From sequence record MW879341.1: a stretch of DNA of 64,000 bases. One strand, 5' to 3'. Under the pieces are notes generated by a model. That model worked only from the letters and a program-made list of their open reading frames with translations. It had not been told where the DNA came from and did no database searches. Below, in pieces: positions 2,837 to 44,852 of the stretch. Each line of letters opens with the position of its first letter. Within the stretch, counting starts at the first letter, position 1. Both the position numbers and the translations under genes were made by a program.

Positions 2837-3259
2837 ATGGAATTTTTAGATCCTGTAACCGGGAAGTGGATTAATTCAAACCGCATTCCCGAAGAGGTCC
2901 GTGAACGTATTGCCGATACCGTGGACTGGGACAGTGAAGAAGCTCGTCACAAAATCACCGGTGACGTAGATATCTTTCACGATTGGGTAAACAACAACTT
3001 CGGGATGCGTGAGTTGAACGAAATGTTGGAACCCGCTGACGGTTCTGAACCGGTAATGCCGGAGGAACCCTTCAAGATCGACCCAGACAACCCTGGATAC
3101 AAGTACCATCAGAAACTCGTGCGTCTCTATCCAGATGCTGAGATTCGTGCCCAGGTTGTTAACGATGCGTTAGAACGCGCTATGGACGGCTCAAAGCATC
3201 TCCCGCCAGATGAGCTGTATGATCCAGACGACGAGGTGGACGACTATCATCAATGGTAA
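2837..3259 (+). CDS. acidic hypothetical protein
   Basis: The ATG at 2837 (MEFLDP) is preferred over the track's GTG at 2732, which lies inside the structured leader. Confidence 0.7.
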   Translation: MEFLDPVTGKWINSNRIPEEVRERIADTVDWDSEEARHKITGDVDIFHDWVNNNFGMRELNEMLEPADGSEPVMPEEPFKIDPDNPGYKYHQKLVRLYPDAEIRAQVVNDALERAMDGSKHLPPDELYDPDDEVDDYHQW

Positions 3260-3621
3260 AGATCTATACGGCCCAAATCGCGAAGTGGCGTAAGTGTAAG
3301 GAACTAGGTGTACCACTCATCGATACAACGGTGAAGTCGGGTATCAAGACCTTTGCGCCTTCGTGGGATATCGTTAGTCGTGTTAAGGCAGGTACTCTCA
3401 GTGAGGTAGGTTATACTGAGCAGTACCTTGCCATGATGCGTGTGAGTTTCTCAAATAACAAAGAGGAATGGTTAGCACTGCTTCGTGATAACGAAGCTAT
3501 AGCAATAGCGTGTTACTGTACGGCAGGGAAGTTCTGCCACCGATATCTTTTGGTCGATTACCTAGTTAAAGTGTGTGAGCACTTCGGTATTGCTTACGAA
3601 CTCTGCGGAGAGATCCAGTAA
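3253..3621 (+). CDS. DUF488/YeaO-like protein
   Basis: FAPSWDIV and IACYC...FCHR motifs. Confidence 0.65.
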   Translation: MVKIYTAQIAKWRKCKELGVPLIDTTVKSGIKTFAPSWDIVSRVKAGTLSEVGYTEQYLAMMRVSFSNNKEEWLALLRDNEAIAIACYCTAGKFCHRYLLVDYLVKVCEHFGIAYELCGEIQ

Positions 3622-3649
3622 ATAAATACTGAGCAGGATTATCTTGTAG

Positions 3650-3846
3650 TTGAAATATACTATCGCAATCACTCGAAAGGGTGATGCAAAAAGAATTCTG
3701 TAAATCAAAGGAAAGATTTATTAACTAATAAACTAGATACGTAGTATCTACCCTTTAAGTTGTATTCACTAAGAATACAACGGTATGTTTGGACTTGGGT
3801 TTATTAGAGTAACTTTTCCAACTAGGGGACGTTTAGTCCCCCTTGT
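3650..3846 (+). ncRNA. candidate multi-stem ncRNA or attenuator
   Basis: ORF-free 240-nt gap containing a GAAA-capped hairpin, a multiway junction closed by a 9-bp stem, and a terminal aggggac/gtcccct hairpin. Confidence 0.45.
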
Positions 3847-3862
3847 TTAAAGGATGTGAGTT

Positions 3863-4255
3863 ATGTCGAGAGAGTCAGTTATTGGTATGCGCATGCGTAT
3901 CAACGTTATACAGAACATCTTCCGCTATATCGATACTACTGGTGATTATACAGTCGGTCGGTTAGAGGACGCACTCTATCTTTTAAAGGCTGCGATAGAC
4001 GCCGGTGGTGAGTTTACCCTACCGCCCAAAATCCCACACATTAACGTATTGTTTCAGTACAACGAGTACCCGATGGATTTAGTCTACGGGAAAATACTGA
4101 AGCTGTTTGGCATGGATGGCGACACTAACGATCGCCGTATCGCGATGGCTGTCTTAATTGGCACCACGGTTAGAATCGAAACACTGATTAAATTCACCGA
4201 AAAGGTGAAATTGGCTGAAGCTGCGGGTATGGGGTTTGTTGTATGGAAACCATAG
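3863..4255 (+). CDS. hypothetical protein, paralog of 4243-4578
   Basis: Shared blocks GDYTVGRL/GGFTLSEL and FQYNEYPMDL/VQYDGYTIDM. Confidence 0.7.
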   Translation: MSRESVIGMRMRINVIQNIFRYIDTTGDYTVGRLEDALYLLKAAIDAGGEFTLPPKIPHINVLFQYNEYPMDLVYGKILKLFGMDGDTNDRRIAMAVLIGTTVRIETLIKFTEKVKLAEAAGMGFVVWKP

Positions 4256-16040: not shown

Positions 16041-18149
16041 ATGGCACTGAAACGTAACGAGTCAGATAAGGCCGACGGGTCTTCTGGCATGGGGTCATTA
16101 GGGGACGCGCTTTTAGAAGCCGCCGCCAAGAAACCAGACAGCGCCGTAGCTGGCGAATTGTTAGCTGGAGGTGAACGTTCACTGGAGTCGGGTAATGCAC
16201 AGGTAATTAACCCAGAGCCTGTAGCACAACCAATCCCAGCGGCTACACCAGTACAACCAGCGCCTACCGCTCGTCCTGTACAACCAGCAGCACCAACCCA
16301 TAACCACAATTCACAAACTTTCGAAAGCAAGGAACAAAAGATGGAACAAGTTAACGCATACTACGGTCTGGACGATTCTTACTCTGGCCTGAACCGTACT
16401 CTGGGTCTGACCTCTGGCGCTGTAGACGTCAACGAGTTCAAGAAGATCGCAGAGAGCATCCTGGAAAACGATCCGGCTGCATCTAAAAGCTCTTACGGCA
16501 AGCCTTCCTTTATTACTCTGGAAGCTGCTGCCCTGGGTCTGCCGTGCAACGCACTGGCGATCGTAATGAACGCACGTAACGGCGCACAGAACGTGCCGCT
16601 GGTTTACACCCTGCTGATGGAACCATCAGAGCCGCTGGCACCACGCGAATACAATGTAGGCAACTACACTGTTGAGCTGAAAGCTGTAACTGGCGATATC
16701 TACGGTGACGACTTCGCTCGTGCTGTGATGAACCACGTTAAGAAAGTGACCAACTCCGATGCCGATCCAATCGACACCGGCGCTAACGTTGTACCGAACG
16801 GCCTGAGCCTGAAGGACGACGAAAACGCAACTCACGTTCGCAGCATCCTGTTCTTCGCATTCGGCGCACTGAACACCGTTTCCGACGTAATGTTCGGTAC
16901 TCAGAAATTCCTGAGCCTGAAAGTGTCTGGCCAACAGCAGCTGCTGGCTAACATCAACTGGTCTGGCAAACAGCTGGAAACTGCTGCGGGTAACCCTATC
17001 CGTGCAGACATCGTGCTGACCACCACCAAGCGTGCTCGCTTCGACCGTAACCAGACTGCTGCACACGCTGCCGCAACTCGTCCGGTAACTGCGCTGGCTG
17101 CGTACATGGACCTGTTCTACGCACCACCGCGTATCGAAGAGAACCCGAACCAGCAGCAGTACGGCTACAGCAGCTACGGTATCCCTGCGGATGCTAAAGT
17201 AATGTGGTACCCACGTATGGTTATCACTCGCTGCCTGCCACTGGGCAAAGTGATCAACGTTGGTGAACTGCTGCTGACTCTGGCGACTGCTACCGTTATC
17301 GGTACCAAGCACACCTGGATCAACGGCTTCCGTCCGGTGCGTGGTCAGGTTGGTATCCACGACATCGGTGGTCTGGGTTGGGAACATGAGTTCGTGAAAG
17401 GCCAGCTGGCTCCTATCGATTCTCAGGACCCTAAATTCAGCCTGCCTGGTCTGCTGAGCCAGACTGTTGTAGACAACCTGTTCTACAGCATGGACATCGA
17501 CGAAGTTGGTGACCTGACCTGGCTGGAAAGCTCACTGCTGGCAATTGCCCGTGGTGGTGAAGAAGCTGCTGCTGCGAACGATTACATCATCGCCGCTGCA
17601 AACGCACTGACCGATAACAAGTTCTCTGAGTGCTACGACGTGACTCAGCCGATTCTGGTTAACGAAGTCGTGCGCGTACACACTGGCTACTACATGGAAG
17701 GTGACCAGAAAGTTGACCTGCGTAACATCGACCACCTGGCAGTCCTGAACATGACCGGTAAGAACGGTTTTGGTCTGGCACAGAAATGGTCTAACGCGCT
17801 GGTAGACTACCCGAACAACAACGCACTGTCTCAGCAGGAACGTCAGAACATCCTGGGTGAGCTGGCACCGAACGCTGTGATCAACGGCTACGCATCTCGC
17901 GTGACCTTCAACTCCGCGTTCCTGTTCGGTCTGGCGTCTGCGATCTCTAAAGCTGGCACCACTCTGGTTGTCAACGACGATGGCCGTCAGGCTACTCAGG
18001 AAGCTCGCGTGACTGCATCTTACGCGTCCTTCGGTCAGGGTAACGTGTACACCACCTCCCTGGTATCTCAAGGTTACGGCAATGGTCAGAACCGTTCTCC
18101 GCGTGCTGTACAGACTCCTGTGTCTGGCAACATCTGGGGCAACATCTAA
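16041..18149 (+). CDS. chmA: chimallin, the major phage-nucleus shell protein (phiKZ gp54 / 201phi2-1 gp105 family)
   Basis: Blocks GNPIRADIVL, HDIGGLG, GYY...DLRNIDHLAVLN and RVTFNSAF match the chimallin family. Sits directly upstream of the nvRNAP beta' gene, with an early promoter, extreme high-expression codon bias and a flexible C-terminal tail. Confidence 0.9.
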   Translation: MALKRNESDKADGSSGMGSLGDALLEAAAKKPDSAVAGELLAGGERSLESGNAQVINPEPVAQPIPAATPVQPAPTARPVQPAAPTHNHNSQTFESKEQKMEQVNAYYGLDDSYSGLNRTLGLTSGAVDVNEFKKIAESILENDPAASKSSYGKPSFITLEAAALGLPCNALAIVMNARNGAQNVPLVYTLLMEPSEPLAPREYNVGNYTVELKAVTGDIYGDDFARAVMNHVKKVTNSDADPIDTGANVVPNGLSLKDDENATHVRSILFFAFGALNTVSDVMFGTQKFLSLKVSGQQQLLANINWSGKQLETAAGNPIRADIVLTTTKRARFDRNQTAAHAAATRPVTALAAYMDLFYAPPRIEENPNQQQYGYSSYGIPADAKVMWYPRMVITRCLPLGKVINVGELLLTLATATVIGTKHTWINGFRPVRGQVGIHDIGGLGWEHEFVKGQLAPIDSQDPKFSLPGLLSQTVVDNLFYSMDIDEVGDLTWLESSLLAIARGGEEAAAANDYIIAAANALTDNKFSECYDVTQPILVNEVVRVHTGYYMEGDQKVDLRNIDHLAVLNMTGKNGFGLAQKWSNALVDYPNNNALSQQERQNILGELAPNAVINGYASRVTFNSAFLFGLASAISKAGTTLVVNDDGRQATQEARVTASYASFGQGNVYTTSLVSQGYGNGQNRSPRAVQTPVSGNIWGNI

Positions 18150-30432: not shown

Positions 30433-32004
30433 ATGAGAATTTATCCTCTCGATAATTCGAACAAACTTTCAGGCATCGTGTTGGAGCATAATGGTGAGCG
30501 TATAGTCTCTGAGGGGAGCATTTACGACCGCACACCATTTCCTTCTACAGGTGAGCTGTTCATGGACATTAACGCATTCTGGGCAACCTTGAGTGCGGAA
30601 CGTCAGCAGGGTATCTGGAACACGTATAAGGAGATTGAAGAAGCCTTCCTTAATACGTACAACGATTCTCGATTGCACGAGAACGTCACGGCATTAGTGG
30701 CTAAGCTCTATTCGCACTGGTCATATGAAGAACTGTGTAGTTGGGTGAGACTGTATGGTCGAACTGTCATTCCGGTAGAGGTTCAGGATGACATTGGTGG
30801 TTACTCGTCACAAGCGAGAACATACCTGCGTGCAGATTATCAGGGATTAATTTGTCTGGTAGTAGCACTGCGTCCAATGATTCCAATCTGGAACCAGTAC
30901 GTTCGTGAGTCTAAGAAAACAGTAGGTACTCACTTCAAAGAGTATATGGCAATGGGTCTGTTGAATCAGACTACTATGCTGGACACTCCAGAGTTTGACC
31001 AACTGCGTACTTACGTCAGACTGAACGTAGATACAAACAAGATTACGATGTCTGCTATTGTAGCGGGTATCGGTAGTGCGGATTTAGAAGACTGGGTATT
31101 CTCAGTGGTCTTAATTCGTAAGGTGTGCGTGGGTGTGATTATGCACGCAACGCCAGATGGTGAGTTACTGTCGAACTACAGCACGAGTGCAAACATCGTG
31201 TCTAACGTGTACCGACAGATTGAAACTGCGATTGCAAGTCTTGACCGTAAGTTCGATGGTCAGATTCGTAAGAAGCCGGACGGTATGGAGTTCCGTGATG
31301 ATGATAAAGAATCACAAGCGGAGAAGATCATTGTCAAGCAAAAGATCAATGATTATAAATTCATTCTGGCACACGAGTATGCTAAGTTCATTATGCGTGC
31401 GCGTGACCTGATTGATCCCTCCATTCCAAAAGGGTTGATTGACCAATGCATTCGTACTCTGAATGCAAACAAGTCATTCCAACCTACCCAGGCACAAACT
31501 ACACTGGCACAATGGGTTATCCACCCAGCACTGTCAGCACGGTTTGTACCGGCGTTAGAGCAACCAGAGCGTATTAACGTAATGGGCTTTGCGCAAGCAG
31601 CTTATTGGCATTGGGGTTATTACGATCTCGCACTGCTGATGACTGCGGATGCATTAGAGTTAGACCAGGACCAAGTCTTTGGTAATGAGTCACGCTCTCG
31701 TGTAACCAATGAGCAGTTCCGTATTCTGAAAGAGCAGTATCCGCATTACCATCGTCGTGCTGGGAATAAAGGTGAACCCCAGCAGCGCAATGAGAACTTG
31801 GCAACCAATGCGATTGAGTTGATGTATGGAATGTTCGACGGGAAACCGTGGCAGTTCAATGCACCGCAAGATCTGGTAGCACAAACTACAATGCGTCCAT
31901 ACGGTAGTGGTGGTTGGATTATCCCATCCGACATCAAACTCCAACTGGCCGACTTCATTATCACCCTGAACAATAGAAAGAAAGGATTAAAAGATGCTAA
32001 TTAA
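30433..32004 (+). CDS. nvRNAP sigma-like promoter-specificity subunit (phiKZ gp68-like)
   Basis: 523 aa, matching the expected size, in the canonical position before PicA and the nvRNAP beta gene. No sigma motif is directly recognisable. Confidence 0.75.
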   Translation: MRIYPLDNSNKLSGIVLEHNGERIVSEGSIYDRTPFPSTGELFMDINAFWATLSAERQQGIWNTYKEIEEAFLNTYNDSRLHENVTALVAKLYSHWSYEELCSWVRLYGRTVIPVEVQDDIGGYSSQARTYLRADYQGLICLVVALRPMIPIWNQYVRESKKTVGTHFKEYMAMGLLNQTTMLDTPEFDQLRTYVRLNVDTNKITMSAIVAGIGSADLEDWVFSVVLIRKVCVGVIMHATPDGELLSNYSTSANIVSNVYRQIETAIASLDRKFDGQIRKKPDGMEFRDDDKESQAEKIIVKQKINDYKFILAHEYAKFIMRARDLIDPSIPKGLIDQCIRTLNANKSFQPTQAQTTLAQWVIHPALSARFVPALEQPERINVMGFAQAAYWHWGYYDLALLMTADALELDQDQVFGNESRSRVTNEQFRILKEQYPHYHRRAGNKGEPQQRNENLATNAIELMYGMFDGKPWQFNAPQDLVAQTTMRPYGSGGWIIPSDIKLQLADFIITLNNRKKGLKDAN

Positions 32005-33445
32005 ACGCGTTATACTCACCGAGACCGGCACCTACAACGACGTATACAACCGTCCGCATACGACGACTGTTAAAGGTGACACACTCAGCCGCATGCAGCG
32101 ACTCACTGACTCTGGTACTAACTACAGCACTGATGCGCTGTCTGGTGTAGCGGGTGAACTGATGCGTCCGTCGGCTCACGTTGAATCAGCAGTGTTGATT
32201 CCAAACGGTTATGGTGAGGCCCGCTTCCGCTTCATGATGGAAGTTGAATGGCCTATGGTAGGTGGTAATACTCAGGTAGATGTTATCTGTGGTTATACTA
32301 ACTATTGTGGTGTATCGCAGAACAGCAACAACATGGACCCTAACATGCTGTTGAATCTGAATAGCGTCACGAGCATCACCTCATACACTCGCCTGGATAG
32401 CATGAATCGTCCGTATCGTGATATTCACGTACGTGAGTCGAATCAGATCCTGACCAGTTATTTCAATCCACAGCAACAGTACAACCAGTTCTATCTGGCA
32501 CCACAAGACGTGTTCGATGGTATCACGCTGAACAACACGCTGGGTGGTCTGCAAGATGGTCGTAACATCCGTACAGTAGATACTCGCGGTGCATCTATGG
32601 AAGCGCCACGACTGTCACGCCGTAGTAACAACCACGGTGGCTCGTACATGTCACGTACACTGAGTGCGTATCACACGGCATTGCAGAAAGCGTCTGTCTC
32701 TGATGACAACTACGCTAACGTAATGCGCAGTGCGAAAGCGGCAGTAGTCGATACCAATGCGTACGACAACCTCAGTCTGTCTAATCTGTTGCACCACACC
32801 GACATGCAGTACACCCAGACTATCCGTTGGGCTGAACTGCTGCAAATCTGTCCAGACCTGGAGCAGCGTACTACCGTAGCATTCAACCGTGGTGCTCTGG
32901 TTCGTTCTCGTGGTCCAGGCGATGCATTGCCAACTCGTGGTGAAACTGAGCAGTGGGATACAGCAACCAATGAAACGGTTGTTGCAACCATGATCGTTAA
33001 CACCATTCCGACTCTGATGTCTGAAGCCAAGCTGACGCAGATTGCATTCAGTGCAACTAACCAGACCATGGGGACTAACAACGGTACACCGTATGCAGTC
33101 ACTGTGAACGATGCACGTAGTGTGTCTCAGATGTTGGAGATCCAATCGCCATACATGCAGGATAACATCCATGCTATGGTGATGCGCATCGCTACTGAGT
33201 TGATGCCTGCTATCACATTCAACAACCAGATGGCTGCAACCATCACCTGTCGTTGTGATATCATGGGTAATACCCATATCGAAGTTTCACTTAACGGCGG
33301 TCCGTTGATTCCATACGACAACCCACAGTGGAGCGATTCAGCAAGCGCACCAGTTGTTACCATCAATCAGGATAACCGTAAGACGCTGGCTCGTGATATC
33401 AGCAGCATCATGGAAAACCTGAACACCGAAAACTGGGCACAATAA
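31994..33445 (+). CDS. picA: PicA/Imp1 phage-nucleus protein import factor (phiKZ gp69-like)
   Basis: Directly follows the gp68-like gene; N-terminal ETGTYNDVYNRP block; 483 aa. Confidence 0.72.
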   Translation: MLIKRVILTETGTYNDVYNRPHTTTVKGDTLSRMQRLTDSGTNYSTDALSGVAGELMRPSAHVESAVLIPNGYGEARFRFMMEVEWPMVGGNTQVDVICGYTNYCGVSQNSNNMDPNMLLNLNSVTSITSYTRLDSMNRPYRDIHVRESNQILTSYFNPQQQYNQFYLAPQDVFDGITLNNTLGGLQDGRNIRTVDTRGASMEAPRLSRRSNNHGGSYMSRTLSAYHTALQKASVSDDNYANVMRSAKAAVVDTNAYDNLSLSNLLHHTDMQYTQTIRWAELLQICPDLEQRTTVAFNRGALVRSRGPGDALPTRGETEQWDTATNETVVATMIVNTIPTLMSEAKLTQIAFSATNQTMGTNNGTPYAVTVNDARSVSQMLEIQSPYMQDNIHAMVMRIATELMPAITFNNQMAATITCRCDIMGNTHIEVSLNGGPLIPYDNPQWSDSASAPVVTINQDNRKTLARDISSIMENLNTENWAQ

Positions 33446-33454
33446 GGAAAGAGA

Positions 33455-35005
33455 ATGAACATTAATGATAAGTTGTATCGGCCGTTCATCGCGTCCGCAG
33501 GTATGGTCGTGGACGACGAAGGCGTAATCCGCTACAAGGTGGGTGACGTGGCTGTGAACATCGCTTTCGATGGTAAGCCGATGGTACTGCCAACTGCTGA
33601 GCGACTGCGTGGTGGTGCACTGACTGGCTCAGTAGCATTCCATCCCTTGTCTGAGAACATCATTCGTGGTGAATCTCCAGTACTGCGTAAGCTGCGTACC
33701 GTTCTGGTAACTCGCCTGTCTAACGTTGCGTCGATGTTGATGCTGCGTATGGTAGAGATCGCGGTGGACGTTGACTATCAGTCTAAACTGAAAGCATCGG
33801 AAGCTGACTTCCTGACCACCCTGCCAAAAGCAGACGTCAAGCTGTTCAACACGATGGTGAAAATCGTCAACGCAATTACCCCGGATAAAGATTATCGCTT
33901 CCTGCGTATCTTCTTTAAACGCGGTGGGATGTATCAGGGTGACAAATACGCTCGCGTAGCAATCACCACCTTCCCAATCGTAGATGCGCTGTTCGATGAC
34001 AGTTCTGAACTGTTCGGCTGCAAGTTGCGTAAAACGGATAAGACTCAGCTGCAAGACCTGCTGACCTTCCTGGTTCCAGATTCTAAAGAACCAACCGAAG
34101 CATACAACTGCGGTTCTAACTCTAAGACTGCACCGTACTTCGATGCACTGGTGGGTACGTTCGTTAAAGTGGCAACTGCACTGAACAAACACACCAAAGC
34201 GCTGAAGAAGCATCTCGAAGATTACGACGAACTGTATATCGATACCAGTTGGGTAGAGCAGTTGAAGAACCTGGACTCACTGAGTCTGGAGATTCCAGCC
34301 CTGCCAGGTAACGAAGGTGACGTCGGTATCGAAGAGAAACATCAGGTTGAACTGGAAGCTGCGAACACTGCTGCTACCGCCGCGCCATCTGCACCAGTTA
34401 CTGAAGCACGCGCCGCCATGCCTACTCGTCTGGGTGCTGGCTTTGCGAACGCGTTGGAAACTGGCCATGTAGGTAGTGTGGCTGATGCCGTAGTACCACG
34501 CGGAGCACCACCGGCAGCAGTGGCACCACAACCACAACCTACCACTGCACCACGTATGGCTGGTATGCCTAACGGTCACGTAGCACCAGCCACTCACGTA
34601 CCGCACTATGCACAGACAGCACAGGCACAAGCTCCAGCCGCAGCTGCTACTGAGACTGGTGGTAAACTGTCATGGGATTCCGTAGTCGCTGCTAACCCGC
34701 CGCGTCAACCGGTTCAACCACAACCTCAGTACGGTGCTCCACAGCAACAGCCGCAGTATGGTTATCCGCAGCAAGCTCCACAGCAGCCGCAATACGGGTA
34801 TCCGCAACAGCAGCCGCAGCAACCTCAGTATGGCTATGGCCAACCGCAACAGCCACAGTACGGGTATGGTCAACCTCAGCAACCTCAACAGGGTTACGGG
34901 TACGGCCAGCCACAAGGTCAAGGCTATGGTCGCCCACAAGGCAACGGTTACGGTTCTCCACAACTGTACCCAGACCAAGGTCGTAAAATGCCCAACTACG
35001 GGTAA
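33455..35005 (+). CDS. conserved core protein (phiKZ gp70-like) with P/A linker and Q/P/Y/G tail
   Basis: Position after the PicA-like gene; FHPLSENIIRGES block. Confidence 0.7.
   Translation: MNINDKLYRPFIASAGMVVDDEGVIRYKVGDVAVNIAFDGKPMVLPTAERLRGGALTGSVAFHPLSENIIRGESPVLRKLRTVLVTRLSNVASMLMLRMVEIAVDVDYQSKLKASEADFLTTLPKADVKLFNTMVKIVNAITPDKDYRFLRIFFKRGGMYQGDKYARVAITTFPIVDALFDDSSELFGCKLRKTDKTQLQDLLTFLVPDSKEPTEAYNCGSNSKTAPYFDALVGTFVKVATALNKHTKALKKHLEDYDELYIDTSWVEQLKNLDSLSLEIPALPGNEGDVGIEEKHQVELEAANTAATAAPSAPVTEARAAMPTRLGAGFANALETGHVGSVADAVVPRGAPPAAVAPQPQPTTAPRMAGMPNGHVAPATHVPHYAQTAQAQAPAAAATETGGKLSWDSVVAANPPRQPVQPQPQYGAPQQQPQYGYPQQAPQQPQYGYPQQQPQQPQYGYGQPQQPQYGYGQPQQPQQGYGYGQPQGQGYGRPQGNGYGSPQLYPDQGRKMPNYG
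34710..34975 (+). repeat. coding prion-like repeat (PQQPQYGY units)
   Basis: About 7 imperfect QPQYG(Y/A) units with varied synonymous codons. Confidence 0.9.
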
Positions 35006-39654: not shown

Positions 39655-41196
39655 ATGGCCATAATGACCTTAGAGATCTACGGACAGAGTATTAAAGTGC
39701 TCTCCAAAGATAACTACGGTATTGCGTGCGCGCTTGAGTTTTGTCGTAGCATGATAAAGTACAAGATGGAAAACGTGGTAGACACCAGTCGACCCGGATA
39801 TCATGCCCAGATGGTGCGTGTGCCTGACTGTACCTATGCAGCTTCGCCGCTCAACCGAGCATTCTTTTGTATTCACATTGGACAGAGACAGGAGTTTCTT
39901 GCTTACCTGCAACGCTGTGGTATTCCGCAGGACCAGATAAAGATTGTAGAAGTCCCTAAGTATAAGGCTACACCGGCCAAGTTGAAGATGAAAGATTTCT
40001 GGGTGGATAAACCACACCAGACGCCAATCATCGAATACGTAATTGATGGTGAGTCTTTGAAGATCCTACCCGTTCAGACAGGTGGGGGAAAGACGTATAT
40101 GGCATTGAAAGCCGCCAGTATCTTTGGTGAGCGATTCATGCTTGTTACGCGCGGTGGTTATATTGATAAGTGGATTGAAGACGTTAAGAAAACGTACGAT
40201 ATCGACGACTCAAGAATCATCGTTATCAAAGGCGAGAAAGCCTTGATGCGGGCAATCGAACTTGCTAAGGCTGGCGATTTCGATTACGACGTACTGTTAG
40301 TATCGACCGGTGGGTTAGCCGACTATATCAAACACTACGAGCAGTATCTAGGAACAGAACTGGGCGACCTGTATCTGGACCCTCGTGCGCTCGGTATGTT
40401 GTTTGGTGTTGGCCTGCGTATCGTGGATGAAGCTCACCAGATGCTTCACATGTACTATCGCATCGACTTGTACAGCCACTTCAACAAAGTGTTGTTCTTG
40501 TCAGCGACCATCATCGGTAACGATGCTATGGAGAAACGTATCCACGAGATTATCTACCCTACAGCGAAACGCTATACTGGGGCAGAGTGGAAGTGTTACA
40601 TTGTGGCAACTGCATTACGCTACAATCTGAACGAACCACACAAAGCACGCTTCAAAGACCACCGGAAGAACTATTCGCATGTAGTGTATGAACAGTACCT
40701 CATGCGTAATAAGGAGAAGCTCAAGAACTACCTGAATATGGTGGGGAACTTAGCCTACGACTTCTTTAAGAATCGTAAGCCGGGTCAAAAGTATCTGATC
40801 TTTGCTTCAACCGTTGACATGTGTAATGTGATGGTTGCAGATTTAAAGAAACGATTCCCTCATCTTAAAGTGGGTCGCTACGTTGCCGAGGATAACCTTG
40901 AGGATATCTACGAATACGATTTAACAGTGACTACTCCGGGTTCAGGTGGTACGGGCATCGACATCCCAGATCTGGCAGCAGCCCTCGCTACGTCGAGTGT
41001 CAGTTCAGGGAAGTTGAACATCCAGATGCTTGGTCGTCTGCGTGAACTCAAGAACTACCCGGGTGAGTTCCCAGAGTATCAGTATCTGGTCTGCTCCGAC
41101 ATTCCTAAGCAGGTTGAGTACCATAAACAAAAGTACGAACTGTTCCAAGGAAAAGTAAAAACGCATCGGGAACAAATGACCGGCGCGTCAGTGTAA
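39655..41196 (+). CDS. superfamily 2 (DEAH) helicase (phiKZ gp75/UvsW-like)
   Basis: QTGGGKT, IVDEAH, SAT and QMLGRLR motifs. Confidence 0.92.
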   Translation: MAIMTLEIYGQSIKVLSKDNYGIACALEFCRSMIKYKMENVVDTSRPGYHAQMVRVPDCTYAASPLNRAFFCIHIGQRQEFLAYLQRCGIPQDQIKIVEVPKYKATPAKLKMKDFWVDKPHQTPIIEYVIDGESLKILPVQTGGGKTYMALKAASIFGERFMLVTRGGYIDKWIEDVKKTYDIDDSRIIVIKGEKALMRAIELAKAGDFDYDVLLVSTGGLADYIKHYEQYLGTELGDLYLDPRALGMLFGVGLRIVDEAHQMLHMYYRIDLYSHFNKVLFLSATIIGNDAMEKRIHEIIYPTAKRYTGAEWKCYIVATALRYNLNEPHKARFKDHRKNYSHVVYEQYLMRNKEKLKNYLNMVGNLAYDFFKNRKPGQKYLIFASTVDMCNVMVADLKKRFPHLKVGRYVAEDNLEDIYEYDLTVTTPGSGGTGIDIPDLAAALATSSVSSGKLNIQMLGRLRELKNYPGEFPEYQYLVCSDIPKQVEYHKQKYELFQGKVKTHREQMTGASV

Positions 41197-41259
41197 TAGA
41201 GCCCACTCCGTCCTGTCCGGCGGAGTGGGTATTTATGTCTTTAATAAGGAAATACAGTT

Positions 41260-41763
41260 ATGTCAGATTTAATGAAAAGCATTACACGTCTTTGCAACAA
41301 ACAGAACTTAGACAAGCGCCTGAAGAAGATCGATCCGTACGATTCCACACTAAGCTCTGAAGATAAAGCGTTGGTGTTCTCAGCGTGTCGTATTAGTGAG
41401 GAGTACTTTTGCCTTATTGTTCGCAATGCACCTTCCACGATGCGTTTGGTGACGCCTGAGTTAGTATCTGGCGGTGTTAAGCAGCTTGTTTTAGAAGGCA
41501 GTGAGTTTGAACGCGTATTGTTGGACGTTCTGCGCGAATCTGAAATACAAGTAGCTAGCCTCAGCGCTCCTTCTATTAAAGCGTGGCTCTTTGACTCGGG
41601 CGATTTGGCCGTTCTGTTGAAGCAGTCAACGCGTCGTCGGGGAGTTAAGGTCTTTATAAAGACAGACCCTGTTGTGATTACACGCAACGGTGCCACGTTC
41701 ACAGATTCTGAACTGACCAGTTTGGACATCGCTACACTGTTTGATTGTGATTGGGTGGAGTAA
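41260..41763 (+). CDS. hypothetical protein
   Basis: AAGGA SD; first gene of the inserted cassette. Confidence 0.7.
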   Translation: MSDLMKSITRLCNKQNLDKRLKKIDPYDSTLSSEDKALVFSACRISEEYFCLIVRNAPSTMRLVTPELVSGGVKQLVLEGSEFERVLLDVLRESEIQVASLSAPSIKAWLFDSGDLAVLLKQSTRRRGVKVFIKTDPVVITRNGATFTDSELTSLDIATLFDCDWVE

Positions 41764-42290
41764 TGGCTTTTACACCGAATAACATGTTCGCCTATGAAAT
41801 CCTAATAGGTTTGATAGATGGGCAACAACCCTCGGACATCGAGCATCGTCACGGTATAACGGGCCGAACGAGTATCAGTAACTGGACGTCACGTCAATTT
41901 GGCTTGACGCCAAAGCAACTGGTAAGCAAAGTTCTGCGTAATGAACTCGGTGTTGCTAAAGGTGATGTCTCATACGTCTCAGGAAGCTCTGAGAATAGAC
42001 ATCTCCTAGCTGTAATACTAGAGGGTGAATTTATGCGTGAGCACCGTAGCGCGCTTCCTAGAGGTGAGTATCACATCTGGGCGTTCTCGGGTCTTATCTG
42101 CGTTCAATGTTCTACGCACTATCCTGAAACAAGGAAAGTGTATCGTCGTATTTATCAGACGAAGAAACCAATCGGAGAACTCTCCGATATCCGAATCCGT
42201 AAAATCTCACCAAGCTGGACTGAGTACCAAGTTACACCTCAGGATATCGCAGCACAGTTTGGTATTATCTGGTTCCCTAACGAGGATTAA
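41763..42290 (+). CDS. array protein A1: HTH-like N-terminus plus CxxCxxH domain
   Basis: SISNWTSRQFGLTPKQL and GEYHIWAFSGLICVQCSTHY; paralog of 43291-43845. Confidence 0.75.
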   Translation: MAFTPNNMFAYEILIGLIDGQQPSDIEHRHGITGRTSISNWTSRQFGLTPKQLVSKVLRNELGVAKGDVSYVSGSSENRHLLAVILEGEFMREHRSALPRGEYHIWAFSGLICVQCSTHYPETRKVYRRIYQTKKPIGELSDIRIRKISPSWTEYQVTPQDIAAQFGIIWFPNED

Positions 42291-42294
42291 AAGA

Positions 42295-42783
42295 ATGAGC
42301 TTTAACAACATTGCAATCTCCCCTATTAAAGAGCACGTAGACGGCGTGTGTGAAACGACACCTATCGGTAATGCTAACTTCTGGACAGTCTACGGCGTGG
42401 GCGCTGATGGTCTCTCAGAGGCTCTGGTGGACGTTGTTAACCAGCAGGCGGCAGTTGACTATGCTCAAAGACATTACCCACGTCTTCCAATCATGCAGTT
42501 GGTACCAGACCGACTCCCAGCCGTCGTCAACGCACCACCACTCAACTACATGGGTTATGAAGTGGTTCCGTTCGCGACTAACGCTGCAAGTGGTGACGAG
42601 CATCCAGTAAGCGACGAACAGTGGGCTGAGTTCTGGGGTCTGTGCGCAGTACATCAGAACGATGCATACACCATTCTGGCTAAACACGACACACGCATGG
42701 GTAGCGAACTGCTGTTGCGTGAGTTGGTGCGTCCTCGCGTTGATCTGCCTGTGGATAATCTGGAGTCTGACTTTACCGACTAA
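42295..42783 (+). CDS. array protein B1, ending LPVDNLESDFTD
   Basis: ATG at 42295 with GAGGA upstream; two internal EQ/xW modules. Confidence 0.75.
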   Translation: MSFNNIAISPIKEHVDGVCETTPIGNANFWTVYGVGADGLSEALVDVVNQQAAVDYAQRHYPRLPIMQLVPDRLPAVVNAPPLNYMGYEVVPFATNAASGDEHPVSDEQWAEFWGLCAVHQNDAYTILAKHDTRMGSELLLRELVRPRVDLPVDNLESDFTD

Positions 42784-42793
42784 GGGGCGTTGC

Positions 42794-43291
42794 GTGGAAT
42801 TTACCAACATTATCATAGAGCCCGTTAAGTGGAACCCTAGAGGTTTCTTTAATGAGGTTTGTGAGTTAGGTCAGCAGGACGCTTGGGAAGTGGTGGGTAT
42901 CACTAAACATAATCGTCGTGTGATACTGGGTGAGGCCGCTACGCAAAAGTCAGCATTGGCATTTGCGGCAGGTCACTCTACCGAGGTCACTCACGGTGTG
43001 TGGAATCACTTCAATAAAGGAAGTACTATCACACAGCGTGTCCCGTCCGATACTCAATTGATCTACGGTTCGCACTCAGACTTCCCACCCACTAAGGCTT
43101 ACGGCATTAGAAGGGTCTCTGACGAACAGTGGGACGTTATTCAGGTTGATGAGAATAAACGTGGGGAGAGTAACGAGCCGGTTGTTATTTCCACGCACCC
43201 TGAGTGGGGACAGGCAAACGGTGCAGCAGTATTGAAAATGGACGGCGTAGTTTTGCCGTCTGATAATCTGGATTCGGAGTATACGGACTAA
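42794..43291 (+). CDS. array protein B2, ending LPSDNLDSEYTD
   Basis: GTG at 42794 with AAGGGG SD; N-terminus aligns with B1 and B3. Confidence 0.75.
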   Translation: MEFTNIIIEPVKWNPRGFFNEVCELGQQDAWEVVGITKHNRRVILGEAATQKSALAFAAGHSTEVTHGVWNHFNKGSTITQRVPSDTQLIYGSHSDFPPTKAYGIRRVSDEQWDVIQVDENKRGESNEPVVISTHPEWGQANGAAVLKMDGVVLPSDNLDSEYTD

Positions 43292-43845
43292 TGGCTGTTG
43301 TTAAAGATATCTATGCTAATCTGAACGTTCGCAAGATAGACATACTGATGGCATTGCGCGACGGGTGGAAACTCACTGACATTGAGTCTCGTTATGACAT
43401 GGGTCGTAGCGCTAGAATCTCTAAGTGGTTGAAACTCTGCTACGGTCGAACGTTTGCAGAACTGCGTAAAGAGTTAGAGAATAACACCACTGCAATTACG
43501 TTTGGTGAAGTCTACTACGCTATGGCTACGCCTGAGCTTATCAATGACATCGCCATGAACCTTGAACTCAAGTCTAACCCGGCCGGTGTGAAAGAAATGC
43601 CAACCGGGCAGTACCACATCTGGTTGTTTGACGATCTGGTCTGTGTGCAGTGTAATAGACACTACGGTAGTCCAATCGGTACATACAAACGTATCTATCG
43701 GACTCGGTTGAATACTGATGACTATCCACCGGGTGCATTGGCTATCCGTAGTCCAACTAACACCAACATCCCAATGATGGCTGAAGACGTCGCTGATATC
43801 TTTGGCTTACTCTGGGTTCCAAGGGGATCGCATGTTAAATATTAG
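43291..43845 (+). CDS. array protein A2: HTH-like N-terminus plus CxxCxxH domain
   Basis: ARISKWLKLCYGRTFAEL and GQYHIWLFDDLVCVQCNRHY. Confidence 0.75.
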   Translation: MAVVKDIYANLNVRKIDILMALRDGWKLTDIESRYDMGRSARISKWLKLCYGRTFAELRKELENNTTAITFGEVYYAMATPELINDIAMNLELKSNPAGVKEMPTGQYHIWLFDDLVCVQCNRHYGSPIGTYKRIYRTRLNTDDYPPGALAIRSPTNTNIPMMAEDVADIFGLLWVPRGSHVKY

Positions 43846-44311
43846 TAAGGTGGTTATCTCACCCTCTAAACTCAATGTGCCGTCTGCGACATTTCTTCCA
43901 TGTTCTCCTGAACAGGCTGAACAGTGGGACGTCGTTGCGCACACGGATAAGGGTGTGATACTGCTTAACAACTGCCCAACGCAGTACTCAGCAATTGCAG
44001 TGGCCACGGCATATCAAACGCCTGACCAGACGCCCGCTATTCGTATGGTGGACAGTATCGGTGTGGAACGAACCATACCGAACGATTGTTTGCCACCGCA
44101 TCAGGAAGCACACTTCGTTGTGTTCAAAGAGGGTGACTATCAGGTAAGGTCGCAGCGGCAGTACGCCACAGCGGCAGTAAGGCAACAACCTGAATCTAAG
44201 GTGTTGTGTAGTCATGGTGGTTTTGATGCCATGGATTTGTGTCAGTTCGAATTAATCGATCGAACGTTAGCCTTACCTCTCGACAACTTAGAGTCGGAGT
44301 ACACTGACTAG
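43832..44311 (+). CDS. array protein B3, ending LPLDNLESEYTD
   Basis: ATG at 43832 with AAGGGG SD. Confidence 0.75.
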   Translation: MLNISKVVISPSKLNVPSATFLPCSPEQAEQWDVVAHTDKGVILLNNCPTQYSAIAVATAYQTPDQTPAIRMVDSIGVERTIPNDCLPPHQEAHFVVFKEGDYQVRSQRQYATAAVRQQPESKVLCSHGGFDAMDLCQFELIDRTLALPLDNLESEYTD

Positions 44312-44318
44312 ATAGACG

Positions 44319-44362
44319 GCATAAAAGCCCCTCTACCTTTTCGGGTAGAGGGGCAGCTATGT
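44319..44362. terminator. bidirectional terminator
   Basis: gcccctctacc/ggtagaggggc with gcata and tatgt flanks. Confidence 0.8.
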
Positions 44363-44375
44363 GCGTCTTTATTTT

Positions 44376-44852
44376 TTATCCTTCTCGAAGTTTCCTTTCT
44401 AACTCTCGAAGGTCTGCATCAGATGCCCCTTGCTTACCCACACCTAAAGCGCTGAGTCGTATAAGTTCTTCCGTGAACTCTCTGGGGAGATGCATGAATT
44501 GTATCAAGTCTAAGCCGAATCGATCTTTGATCGAGTGCTTAATATAACGACCTATCAGATTGTACAGCCCGCTGCCTTCGGTGTATCGTTCAGTGGGATG
44601 CATCGCCACTATACTGAGTGGGTTCGCATTTGGAGAGTTATGGTTAAAGATCCCGTAACTCTGTTCGTACGACTCCAACAGTAGAATGTCTAAGTCAACC
44701 CCACTGATGACATGGTCAACGTGAAACAGTAACGTACCTATTTCTGTACGTGATCGGTCTATATGACTGCCGAAGGTTGGGTCCGCAACGTGTCTGGCTA
44801 GATTGCGTTCAGGTCCTTCAGAGCCTGGTCGATCTTGTGGCGCTGAAGGGTC
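44376..44852 (-). CDS. gp76-like -1 frame extension of the gp77-like protein (tail-chaperone 'T' part)
   Basis: The frame is open from 44870 but has no start codon or SD until a TTG at 44678. It opens just before the slippery site. Confidence 0.65.
   Translation of the reverse strand, partial: DPSAPQDRPGSEGPERNLARHVADPTFGSHIDRSRTEIGTLLFHVDHVISGVDLDILLLESYEQSYGIFNHNSPNANPLSIVAMHPTERYTEGSGLYNLIGRYIKHSIKDRFGLDLIQFMHLPREFTEELIRLSALGVGKQGASDADLRELERKLREG

Follow-up and report, generated by a model that had tools for sequence, protein, structure and literature searches.

What is the role of six small, tightly coupled genes, belonging to only two protein families, that a very large phage carries in one fixed place of its genome? 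This question is raised by positions 41260-44311 of the 64,000-nucleotide stretch of DNA analysed here (the window), which is identical to the last 64 kb (bases 208,636-272,635) of Erwinia phage pEa_SNUABM_54 (MW879341.1, 272,635 bp), a phiKZ-like jumbo phage whose host is Erwinia amylovora. Almost nothing in the record has a name, with 319 of its 320 coding sequences (CDS) labelled 'hypothetical protein', and where the phage is mentioned in the literature it is merely listed. The best match of its helicase among 50,697 phage records is only 35% identical, which leaves the phage without a close sequenced relative. Cassettes of this general kind are familiar, being variable islands of small orphan genes in a fixed slot of a large phage, and they are common in jumbo phages; the present one shows an unusually clean comparative pattern and is one of few loci at which comparison brings some order into the hundreds of unannotated genes that such phages contain. 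No described system matches it, and one of its two families, B, is distantly related to a domain family that is itself uncharacterised.

Our tentative interpretation, to which we give slightly less than an even chance, is that the cassette is an accessory module of two interacting families, a basic one (U/A) and an acidic one (B), which are putative partners under diversification. The two families are regarded as probable partners because they are always found together in related phages. An earlier reading of the bare sequence (the original prediction) had described the locus as an A-B-B-A-B cassette of helix-turn-helix (HTH)/zinc proteins interleaved with diverged paralogs, and had proposed a duplicated two-component module. 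Below we set out what the genes encode, how the slot is filled in related phages, and how the partner interpretation stands against its alternatives.

One operon, two protein families

The region 41260-44311 is one operon, U-A1-B1-B2-A2-B3, made up of two protein families only. The coordinates of all six genes agree with the CDS calls in MW879341.1:

41260-41763, plus strand: U, 167 amino acids (aa); first gene of the operon, annotated CDS, distant A paralog as judged from profiles
41763-42290, plus strand: A1, 175 aa, isoelectric point (pI) 8.6; annotated CDS, paralog of A2
42295-42783, plus strand: B1, 162 aa, pI 4.5; annotated CDS, the B copy nearest to the B genes of distant loci
42794-43291, plus strand: B2, 165 aa, GTG start, pI 5.1; annotated CDS, paralog of B1 and B3
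43291-43845, plus strand: A2, 184 aa, pI 8.4; annotated CDS, paralog of A1
43832-44311, plus strand: B3, 159 aa, pI 4.7; annotated CDS, overlapping the end of A2 by 14 nt

The genes are packed closely. The stop of U overlaps the start of A1 by one base, the subsequent junctions are a 4-nt gap (A1/B1), a 10-nt gap (B1/B2), a 1-nt overlap (B2/A2) and a 14-nt overlap (A2/B3), and a Shine-Dalgarno-like motif lies 5' of every start. Both the A-B-B-A-B order and the tight coupling had been described correctly in the original prediction. Its start of the cassette at 41763 was misplaced by one gene: because U is paralogous to A, the cassette comprises three U/A-type and three B-type genes and begins at 41260.

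The U/A family

A1 and A2 are paralogs, as had been proposed, with 31% identity over 166 aa in an ungapped alignment (E = 3e-30), and the distance between them equals that of either to any distant A (~30% identity). U aligns to the C-terminal region of A, and comparison of the U and A profiles with hhalign (probability 85%, E = 6.5e-6, 121 columns) identifies it as a distant A paralog; it is present in every related locus. Proteins of the family are ~175 aa long and neutral to basic, with pI values of 7.1-9.4 for A and 5.4-9.7 for U proteins. An AlphaFold2 model of A1, built from an 11-sequence alignment, has a mean predicted local distance difference test score (pLDDT) of 88.6 and a predicted template modelling (TM) score of 0.81, and divides the protein as follows:

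41781-41936, plus strand: A1 N-terminal four-helix domain, residues 7-58, HTH-like in the model (helices 7-18, 23-29, 37-46 and 50-58)
41949-42275, plus strand: A1 C-terminal alpha/beta domain, residues 63-171, common to U, with the YHIW, CxxC, YxRIY and FG(I/L)(I/L)W motifs

The four-helix domain was modelled at pLDDT 84-95, and the alpha/beta domain begins with a hairpin and a long helix, continues with four strands and closes with one helix and one strand. The motifs that the original prediction pointed out in A were confirmed, namely those around YHIW, the YxRIY block and, at the end of the protein, FG(I/L)(I/L)W.

The A family is unrecognised by Pfam, NCBIfam, PADLOC, PHROGs and PDB, in line with the earlier remark that no described system could be named, and no match among PDB sequences was found for the profiles of A, B and U or for a protein of the related locus L013. 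Foldseek searches of PDB, which the original prediction had suggested, returned nothing better than E = 0.44 for the A1 model, and no known fold was assigned to it; the sole sensible local fold match is to the helical DNA-binding part of the Sf6 small terminase (56 columns, with a weak E of 1.9). Among the structures in BFVD, the best fold matches of A1 were two uncharacterised proteins of phage PhiEaH1, W8CZM9 and W8CZY2 (198 and 180 aa), which are similar to A1 in size and were matched over their full length (E ~6e-3, prob 0.82-0.89), but the TM-scores were low, at 0.25-0.29, and no sequence similarity accompanied the match in the 60 kb of PhiEaH1 scanned. No profile match was found in those 60 kb either, and PhiEaH1 gp005, which follows the helicase, and gp018 (198 aa) are without similarity to U or A. 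The U/A family is new in sequence, and also in fold as far as a predicted model can show.

The HTH/zinc label of the original prediction failed in its zinc half. An HTH-like domain is suggested by the model, and weak Pfam HTH matches were each obtained with single members among the 11 family members (HTH_18, E = 0.01; GerE, 0.14; HTH_38, 0.27); A1 and A2 themselves have no Pfam match at E <= 1, PF12833 included. The AraC-type likeness that had been suggested is marginal: one of the 11 members matches AraC/XylS (PF12833) at E = 0.01, below the family threshold, and the fold of an AraC-type protein from phage Eowyn is weakly matched (E = 1.1), whereas the other 10 members have no match, the helical region of ~50 residues is too short for a double HTH of ~100 residues, and the rest of the protein is unrelated. 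Zinc binding was rejected for non-conserved ligands. C113 is the only invariant cysteine of the A family, the second Cys of the CxxC motif changes to Asn and His104 to Glu or Gln in distant members, and the three or four conserved Cys/His ligands of a zinc module are not found in this family.

The B family and its invariant tail

B1, B2 and B3 are diverged paralogs, as foreseen, with pairwise identities of 25-35% (E = 5e-8 to 3e-7). The B proteins are ~160 aa long and uniformly acidic (pI 4.5-5.7, net charge -4 to -15). Whereas the bodies of the three copies are this divergent, all end in an invariant C-terminal peptide, LPxDNL(E/D)S(E/D)(Y/F)TD, which was found at no other open reading frame (ORF) of the 272-kb genome:

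42745-42780, plus strand: C-terminal peptide of B1, LPxDNLESDFTD, invariant ending
43253-43288, plus strand: C-terminal peptide of B2, invariant ending
44273-44308, plus strand: C-terminal peptide of B3, invariant ending

A related tail (..NNEDFTD / ..EDFTD) is carried by B-type proteins of L013 and L021, and the ..EDFTD form is recognisable even where the rest of the B sequence is at the detection limit. The body of the protein could be traced from its N-terminal part:

42295-42504, plus strand: residues 1-70 of B1, an N-terminal domain with four strands and a single helix; module resembling DUF2188 and RisingSun gp31

This domain was modelled at pLDDT 81-93. Residues 16-59 of B1 match phrog_23974 (E = 4.6e-8), which is the sole PHROG match among the cassette proteins and is shared by two of six B proteins, B2 and B3 not being among them. 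B1 also matches gp31 of phage RisingSun, a hypothetical protein of 80 aa, in BLASTP (E = 3e-8), and the B profile finds the same protein at E ~1e-5. The tailed B-type protein of L013, which has the two-module architecture of the window B proteins together with the ..EDFTD ending, matches DUF2188 (PF09954) at 28.2 bits (gathering cut-off 22), and its second module matches RisingSun gp31 at E = 5e-5. We read B as DUF2188-like because of the phrog_23974 and gp31 matches and because this tailed L013 protein passes the DUF2188 threshold. None of B1, B2 and B3 matches PF09954 at E <= 1, and the B profile aligns to the L013 DUF2188 protein with E = 0.009 over 147 columns at a probability of just 4.5%.

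From these alignments, B probably consists of two DUF2188-like modules, the second of them weaker, followed by the tail. The internal duplication noticed in the original prediction is plausible but weakly supported: both halves of B1 align to RisingSun gp31 (E = 3e-8 and 0.012), and the halves compared with each other as profiles give E = 2e-3 in the window clade and 4e-4 in the distant clade. A Foldseek search of PDB with the B1 model, likewise suggested earlier, gave a best E of 0.53 and assigned no known fold, the low-confidence C-terminal half hampering the search.

The B proteins of distant loci align to the window B family in hhalign with a probability of 97% and E = 2e-10. The distal-B profile matches B1 orthologs at E = 2e-9 to 1e-6, B1 being the copy nearest to the distant B proteins, and the B3 orthologs in L003 and L004 are 75-77% identical. 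A relaxed tblastn search with the B1 N-terminus produced mostly chance matches (mycobacteriophage polymerases, and a Rhizobium phage on the wrong strand), and only RisingSun gp31 held. The gp31 gene (L011, 2935-3177) lies in the block between the RNA-polymerase beta' gene and the SbcD gene; PhiEaH1, a phage that encodes PhuZ and a nuclear shell protein, has this block too (L020, 8801-11893), but without a detected B-type gene. In L017 the B-type protein (3164-3958) is 264 aa long, with 100 additional residues at the C-terminus that resemble a third copy of the small module.

Slot composition in related phages

A tblastn search of the 50,697 phage records with A1 and B1 returned only the phage itself, pattern scans of IMG/VR (A and B profiles) and of JGI metagenomes (A profile) found nothing, and when 1.84 billion representative proteins were searched exhaustively by profile, only seven A-family clusters were returned. 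Every A-family match that could be placed on a contig occupies the same slot, which extends from the helicase gene to a conserved convergent gene of ~100 aa. At least five phage lineages, which are known only from metagenomes, carry U/A and B genes together in this slot, which follows the RNA-polymerase/helicase block, and no complete slot of this clade of phages lacks either family. Elsewhere in the 272-kb genome there is no further match to the three profiles or to the tail. The original prediction had called for a search of gene neighbourhoods, and its refutation included A and B homologs failing to co-occur; they are found together elsewhere, in the same slot and in several lineages, though not as fixed pairs. 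The slots read:

L004: U-A-B-B-A-B
L002: U-A-B-B-A (A2 without B3)
L003: U, an A gene disrupted by one frameshift, and B3 as the sole B
L013: B with tail, U, A, B without tail
L014: U-U'-U''-A-B
L017: U-A-B, with B extended to 264 aa
L021: A-U-U'-U''-tailed B-B-B

The U/A:B ratios in these seven loci are 3:3, 3:2, 2:1, 2:2, 4:1, 2:1 and 4:3, and each family has undergone lineage-specific duplication, loss and reordering independently. The triplicated U genes in L014 (6563-8004) and L021 (4001-5442) encode proteins of 181, 127 and 183 aa, the middle copy being shortened at its N-terminus, and this arrangement is common to at least five contigs. Because the window holds three U/A and three B genes, and because ratio and order vary between lineages, the cassette is not a duplicated A:B pair; what survives of the predicted two-component module is a multi-component set that diversifies by duplication.

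The cassette also differs from its surroundings in how fast it changes. In close relatives (L004, L002 and L003) the cassette proteins are 56-87% identical to those of the window, compared with 87-99% for flanking proteins, and in distant loci (L013, L014 and L017) the respective values are 16-31% and 42-77%, with the polymerase subunits and the helicase at 63-77%. The ratio of nonsynonymous to synonymous substitution rates (dN/dS) in the cassette, measured against L004 and L002, is 0.04-0.25, which indicates purifying selection on real coding genes. Synonymous divergence (dS) between close relatives ranges from 0.9 to saturated in the cassette, compared with 0.4-1.2 in the flanks, and this excess suggests older alleles or allele exchange between related phages, beyond fast local change.

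A putative partner module and its alternatives

If the two families are partners, how might they act? We propose that U/A and B proteins would work together as binding partners, in which the diversifying B bodies recognise either varying targets or varying U/A partners and so provide specificity, while every B copy attaches at the same site through its constant C-terminal peptide. This site would most economically be the conserved C-terminal domain common to U and A, with a host or phage hub protein as the alternative. The HTH-like domain of A may place the complex on nucleic acid, and the module as a whole would evolve as its genes duplicate and as related phages exchange alleles. A small lead fits docking of the tail on the U/A C-terminal domain, namely that the second Cys of the CxxC motif in A is present in the three lineages with a tailed B (the window clade, L013 and L021) and absent in L014 and L017, whose complete slots have none. 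Such a module would most likely be a regulator/antagonist or host-interaction (possibly counter-defence) accessory set, and not a toxin-antitoxin system.

A number of observations weigh against this interpretation. The Cys/tail correlation covers five lineages only and would be expected by chance about 1 time in 10. Stoichiometry is not kept, as L002 has A2 without B3 and L003 has B3 beside a broken A gene. The equivalent slot in the phages Eowyn, pPa_SNUABM_DT01, PhiEaH1 and RisingSun holds unrelated genes, and since the slot is therefore a hot-spot that contains unrelated genes in other genera, the co-location of U/A and B could partly reflect tolerance of accessory genes. With respect to the proteins themselves, the HTH-like nature of the A N-terminal domain is suggested by the model and by sub-threshold matches, the C-terminal half of B was modelled at a pLDDT below 50 (B1 model), and the membership of B1-B3 in DUF2188 is transitive and unproven because the window proteins miss PF09954.

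The same hot-spot character is the starting point of the strongest alternative, in which the cassette would be six independent accessory genes (e.g. host-defence inhibitors or host-takeover factors) in a slot that tolerates insertions and duplications, without any A-B partnership. We consider this unlikely, though a serious possibility. It would account for the unrelated slot genes of Eowyn, pPa_SNUABM_DT01 and PhiEaH1, for the free variation in order and copy number of each family, for the small size, acidity and fast change of the proteins, and for the elevated dS, which suggests the allele exchange typical of accessory islands. It leaves unexplained why both families are present in every complete slot of the clade despite identities of 16-31% and shuffled order, why translational coupling is kept, and why the B tail is invariant, which implies a common partner.

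A common partner of the tail could also be sought in the neighbouring replication and transcription machinery, with the B tail docking on the helicase, a polymerase or the phage RNA polymerase, and U/A serving as DNA-binding cofactors. The acidic tips of single-strand-binding proteins recruit partners in a comparable manner, the B tail is acidic and aromatic, the A N-terminal domain is HTH-like, and the cassette lies directly 3' of two RNA-polymerase subunit genes and the helicase gene on the same strand, just as RisingSun gp31 likewise lies just after an RNA-polymerase beta' gene. Yet conservation would be expected of such cofactors, and the cassette genes are the least conserved of the region and variable in copy number; other genera with the same helicase and polymerase lack the cassette, and L014 and L017 have complete slots without a tailed B. 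We regard this explanation as improbable.

Tandem-duplicated toxin-antitoxin or abortive-type A/B pairs, which the original prediction had raised as an option, seem very improbable. The likeness to type II toxin-antitoxin systems lies in small, adjacent, translationally coupled genes, one of them encoding an HTH-like and the other an acidic protein. However, no toxin, nuclease or defence family was matched in Pfam, NCBIfam or PADLOC (none of the seven proteins matches a PADLOC-DB family at E <= 1), and no 1:1 pairing is seen, the U/A:B ratio being 3:3 here, 4:3 in L021 and 4:1 in L014. Either partner is lost or broken in relatives while the other is intact (L002 and L003), so that either member is dispensable, and the genes reside in a lytic jumbo phage without a close sequenced relative, not in a host mobile island. 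Free-standing homing-endonuclease-like selfish genes, with the HTH as their DNA-targeting part, would suit an insertion between conserved genes, an HTH-like A domain and the active selfish elements nearby (an intein in the helicase of close relatives), but no nuclease family or motif and no PDB fold match was detected, the conserved A residues are mostly aromatic or hydrophobic and not catalytic-looking, and the family keeps a fixed genomic slot, which makes this explanation extremely improbable; like zinc binding and toxin-antitoxin, it was rejected.

Returning to U/A and B as interacting partners, how does such a module compare with known systems? Anti-CRISPR operons with Aca proteins are an example of phage accessory and anti-defence islands that include an HTH regulator. 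The cassette resembles these islands in that small, fast-changing genes of variable copy number share an operon with a gene for an HTH-like protein and lie in a fixed slot flanked by conserved genes, but here the HTH-like family has undergone duplication too and varies as much as the genes around it, and it matches no canonical HTH model. No named inhibitor family was found for the cassette proteins in PHROGs, Pfam, PDB and BFVD, which are general libraries, no anti-defence library having been compared. RisingSun gp31 and phrog_23974 resemble B1 in sequence, and both occur in Erwinia jumbo phages near RNA-polymerase genes, but gp31 is a single module, lacking a second domain or tail, and no U/A-type gene was detected beside it.

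According to a bioRxiv preprint (10.1101/2022.04.27.489752, citing Burroughs & Aravind 2020), DUF2188 genes are found in bacterial operons with HTH and metallopeptidase regulators, with a predicted role in phage defence. Genes of this kind have further been reported next to CBASS and Thoeris loci. Taken together, this makes a role of the cassette in phage-host conflict a reasonable guess, no more. Besides the L013 protein that passes the family threshold, the likeness extends to the neighbourhood, as DUF2188 genes are reported beside HTH-type regulators and B lies beside the HTH-like A. The differences are that B1-B3 are encoded by a phage, combine tandem modules and a conserved C-terminal peptide in ~160 aa and lack a PF09954 match, and that the putative partner of B is the U/A family and not a pair of the CapH/CapP type (HTH and metallopeptidase).

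The most far-reaching form of the partner interpretation is that U/A and B constitute an undescribed system in which acidic proteins of DUF2188-like modules, which duplicate and diversify, are docked by an invariant peptide onto HTH-bearing partners of a new fold, as an exchangeable device for counter-defence or host reprogramming. We view this form as speculative and distinctly unlikely; if true, it would provide the first functional handle on DUF2188, a domain recurrent in bacterial immune operons. If the partnership as such is real, the cassette would be a tractable entry to the role of the DUF2188-like module and to the diversification of phiKZ-like accessory genes at fixed hot-spots; if it is not, the region is one more variable island of orphan genes.

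Borders of the slot and flanking genes

Two multisubunit RNA-polymerase beta-type proteins and then a superfamily 2 (SF2) helicase are encoded 5' of the cassette on the same strand, and a further RNA-polymerase subunit gene lies a few kb 3' of it. The slot itself is delimited by the following features:

39655-41196, plus strand: SF2/DEAD-type helicase, 513 aa; conserved left border of the slot, matching phrog_16 (DNA helicase) at E = 3e-29
41201-41230, plus strand: terminator-like hairpin with T-rich tail, 12-bp stem with 8 GC pairs, between helicase and cassette
44327-44354, strand not assigned: GC-rich hairpin, 11-bp stem, between the cassette and the convergent minus-strand gene; minus-strand terminator (TTTTAT tail)
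44376-44678, minus strand: small conserved gene, 100 aa from a TTG start at 44678; right border of the slot, matching phrog_12109

The original prediction had placed the cassette between a helicase terminator and a bidirectional terminator, and the first of these is well founded. The hairpin at 41201-41230 is kept in eight loci (the window, L002, L003, L004, L013, L014, L017 and L021), with compensatory stem changes between clades, and is followed in all eight by an invariant TTTATG; this conserved RNA or terminator element could set the level of transcription that reaches the cassette. The bidirectional nature of the second was not borne out. The hairpin at 44327-44354 has a T-run on the minus-strand side only and none on the plus side, and for this reason it is taken as the terminator of the convergent gene and merely assumed to serve the cassette as well.

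The helicase is 75-77% identical in the distant loci L013, L014 and L017, and the same helicase-side synteny is seen in Eowyn, pPa_SNUABM_DT01 and PhiEaH1. In some relatives that are close or otherwise near-identical, the helicase (513 aa in the window) is 858-862 aa long and contains a LAGLIDADG_3 match (L003, 6457-9033; L005 and L006, 1815-4403), an intein-type insertion that is present in some and absent in other members of the same phage clade.

The right-border gene (44376-44678) is 59-64% identical in distant loci. In GenBank it starts at 44603 (44376-44603, 75 aa), and reading from the TTG extends the protein by an N-terminal segment (..ESYEQSYGIF..) that is kept in all relatives (102-121 aa). 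As all relatives conserve the omitted N-terminus, the deposited start is probably too short.

Two further observations concern the window outside the slot. Directly 5' of the RNA-polymerase genes, three consecutive plus-strand genes encoding proteins of ~480-520 aa (30433-35005) match three different PHROGs of unknown function (3209, 3141 and 3520), and may be a paralogous set. Between 16001 and 18000 the G+C content rises to as much as 0.54, compared with 0.45-0.50 elsewhere in the window, and this stretch coincides with an ORF of 702 aa (16041-18149).

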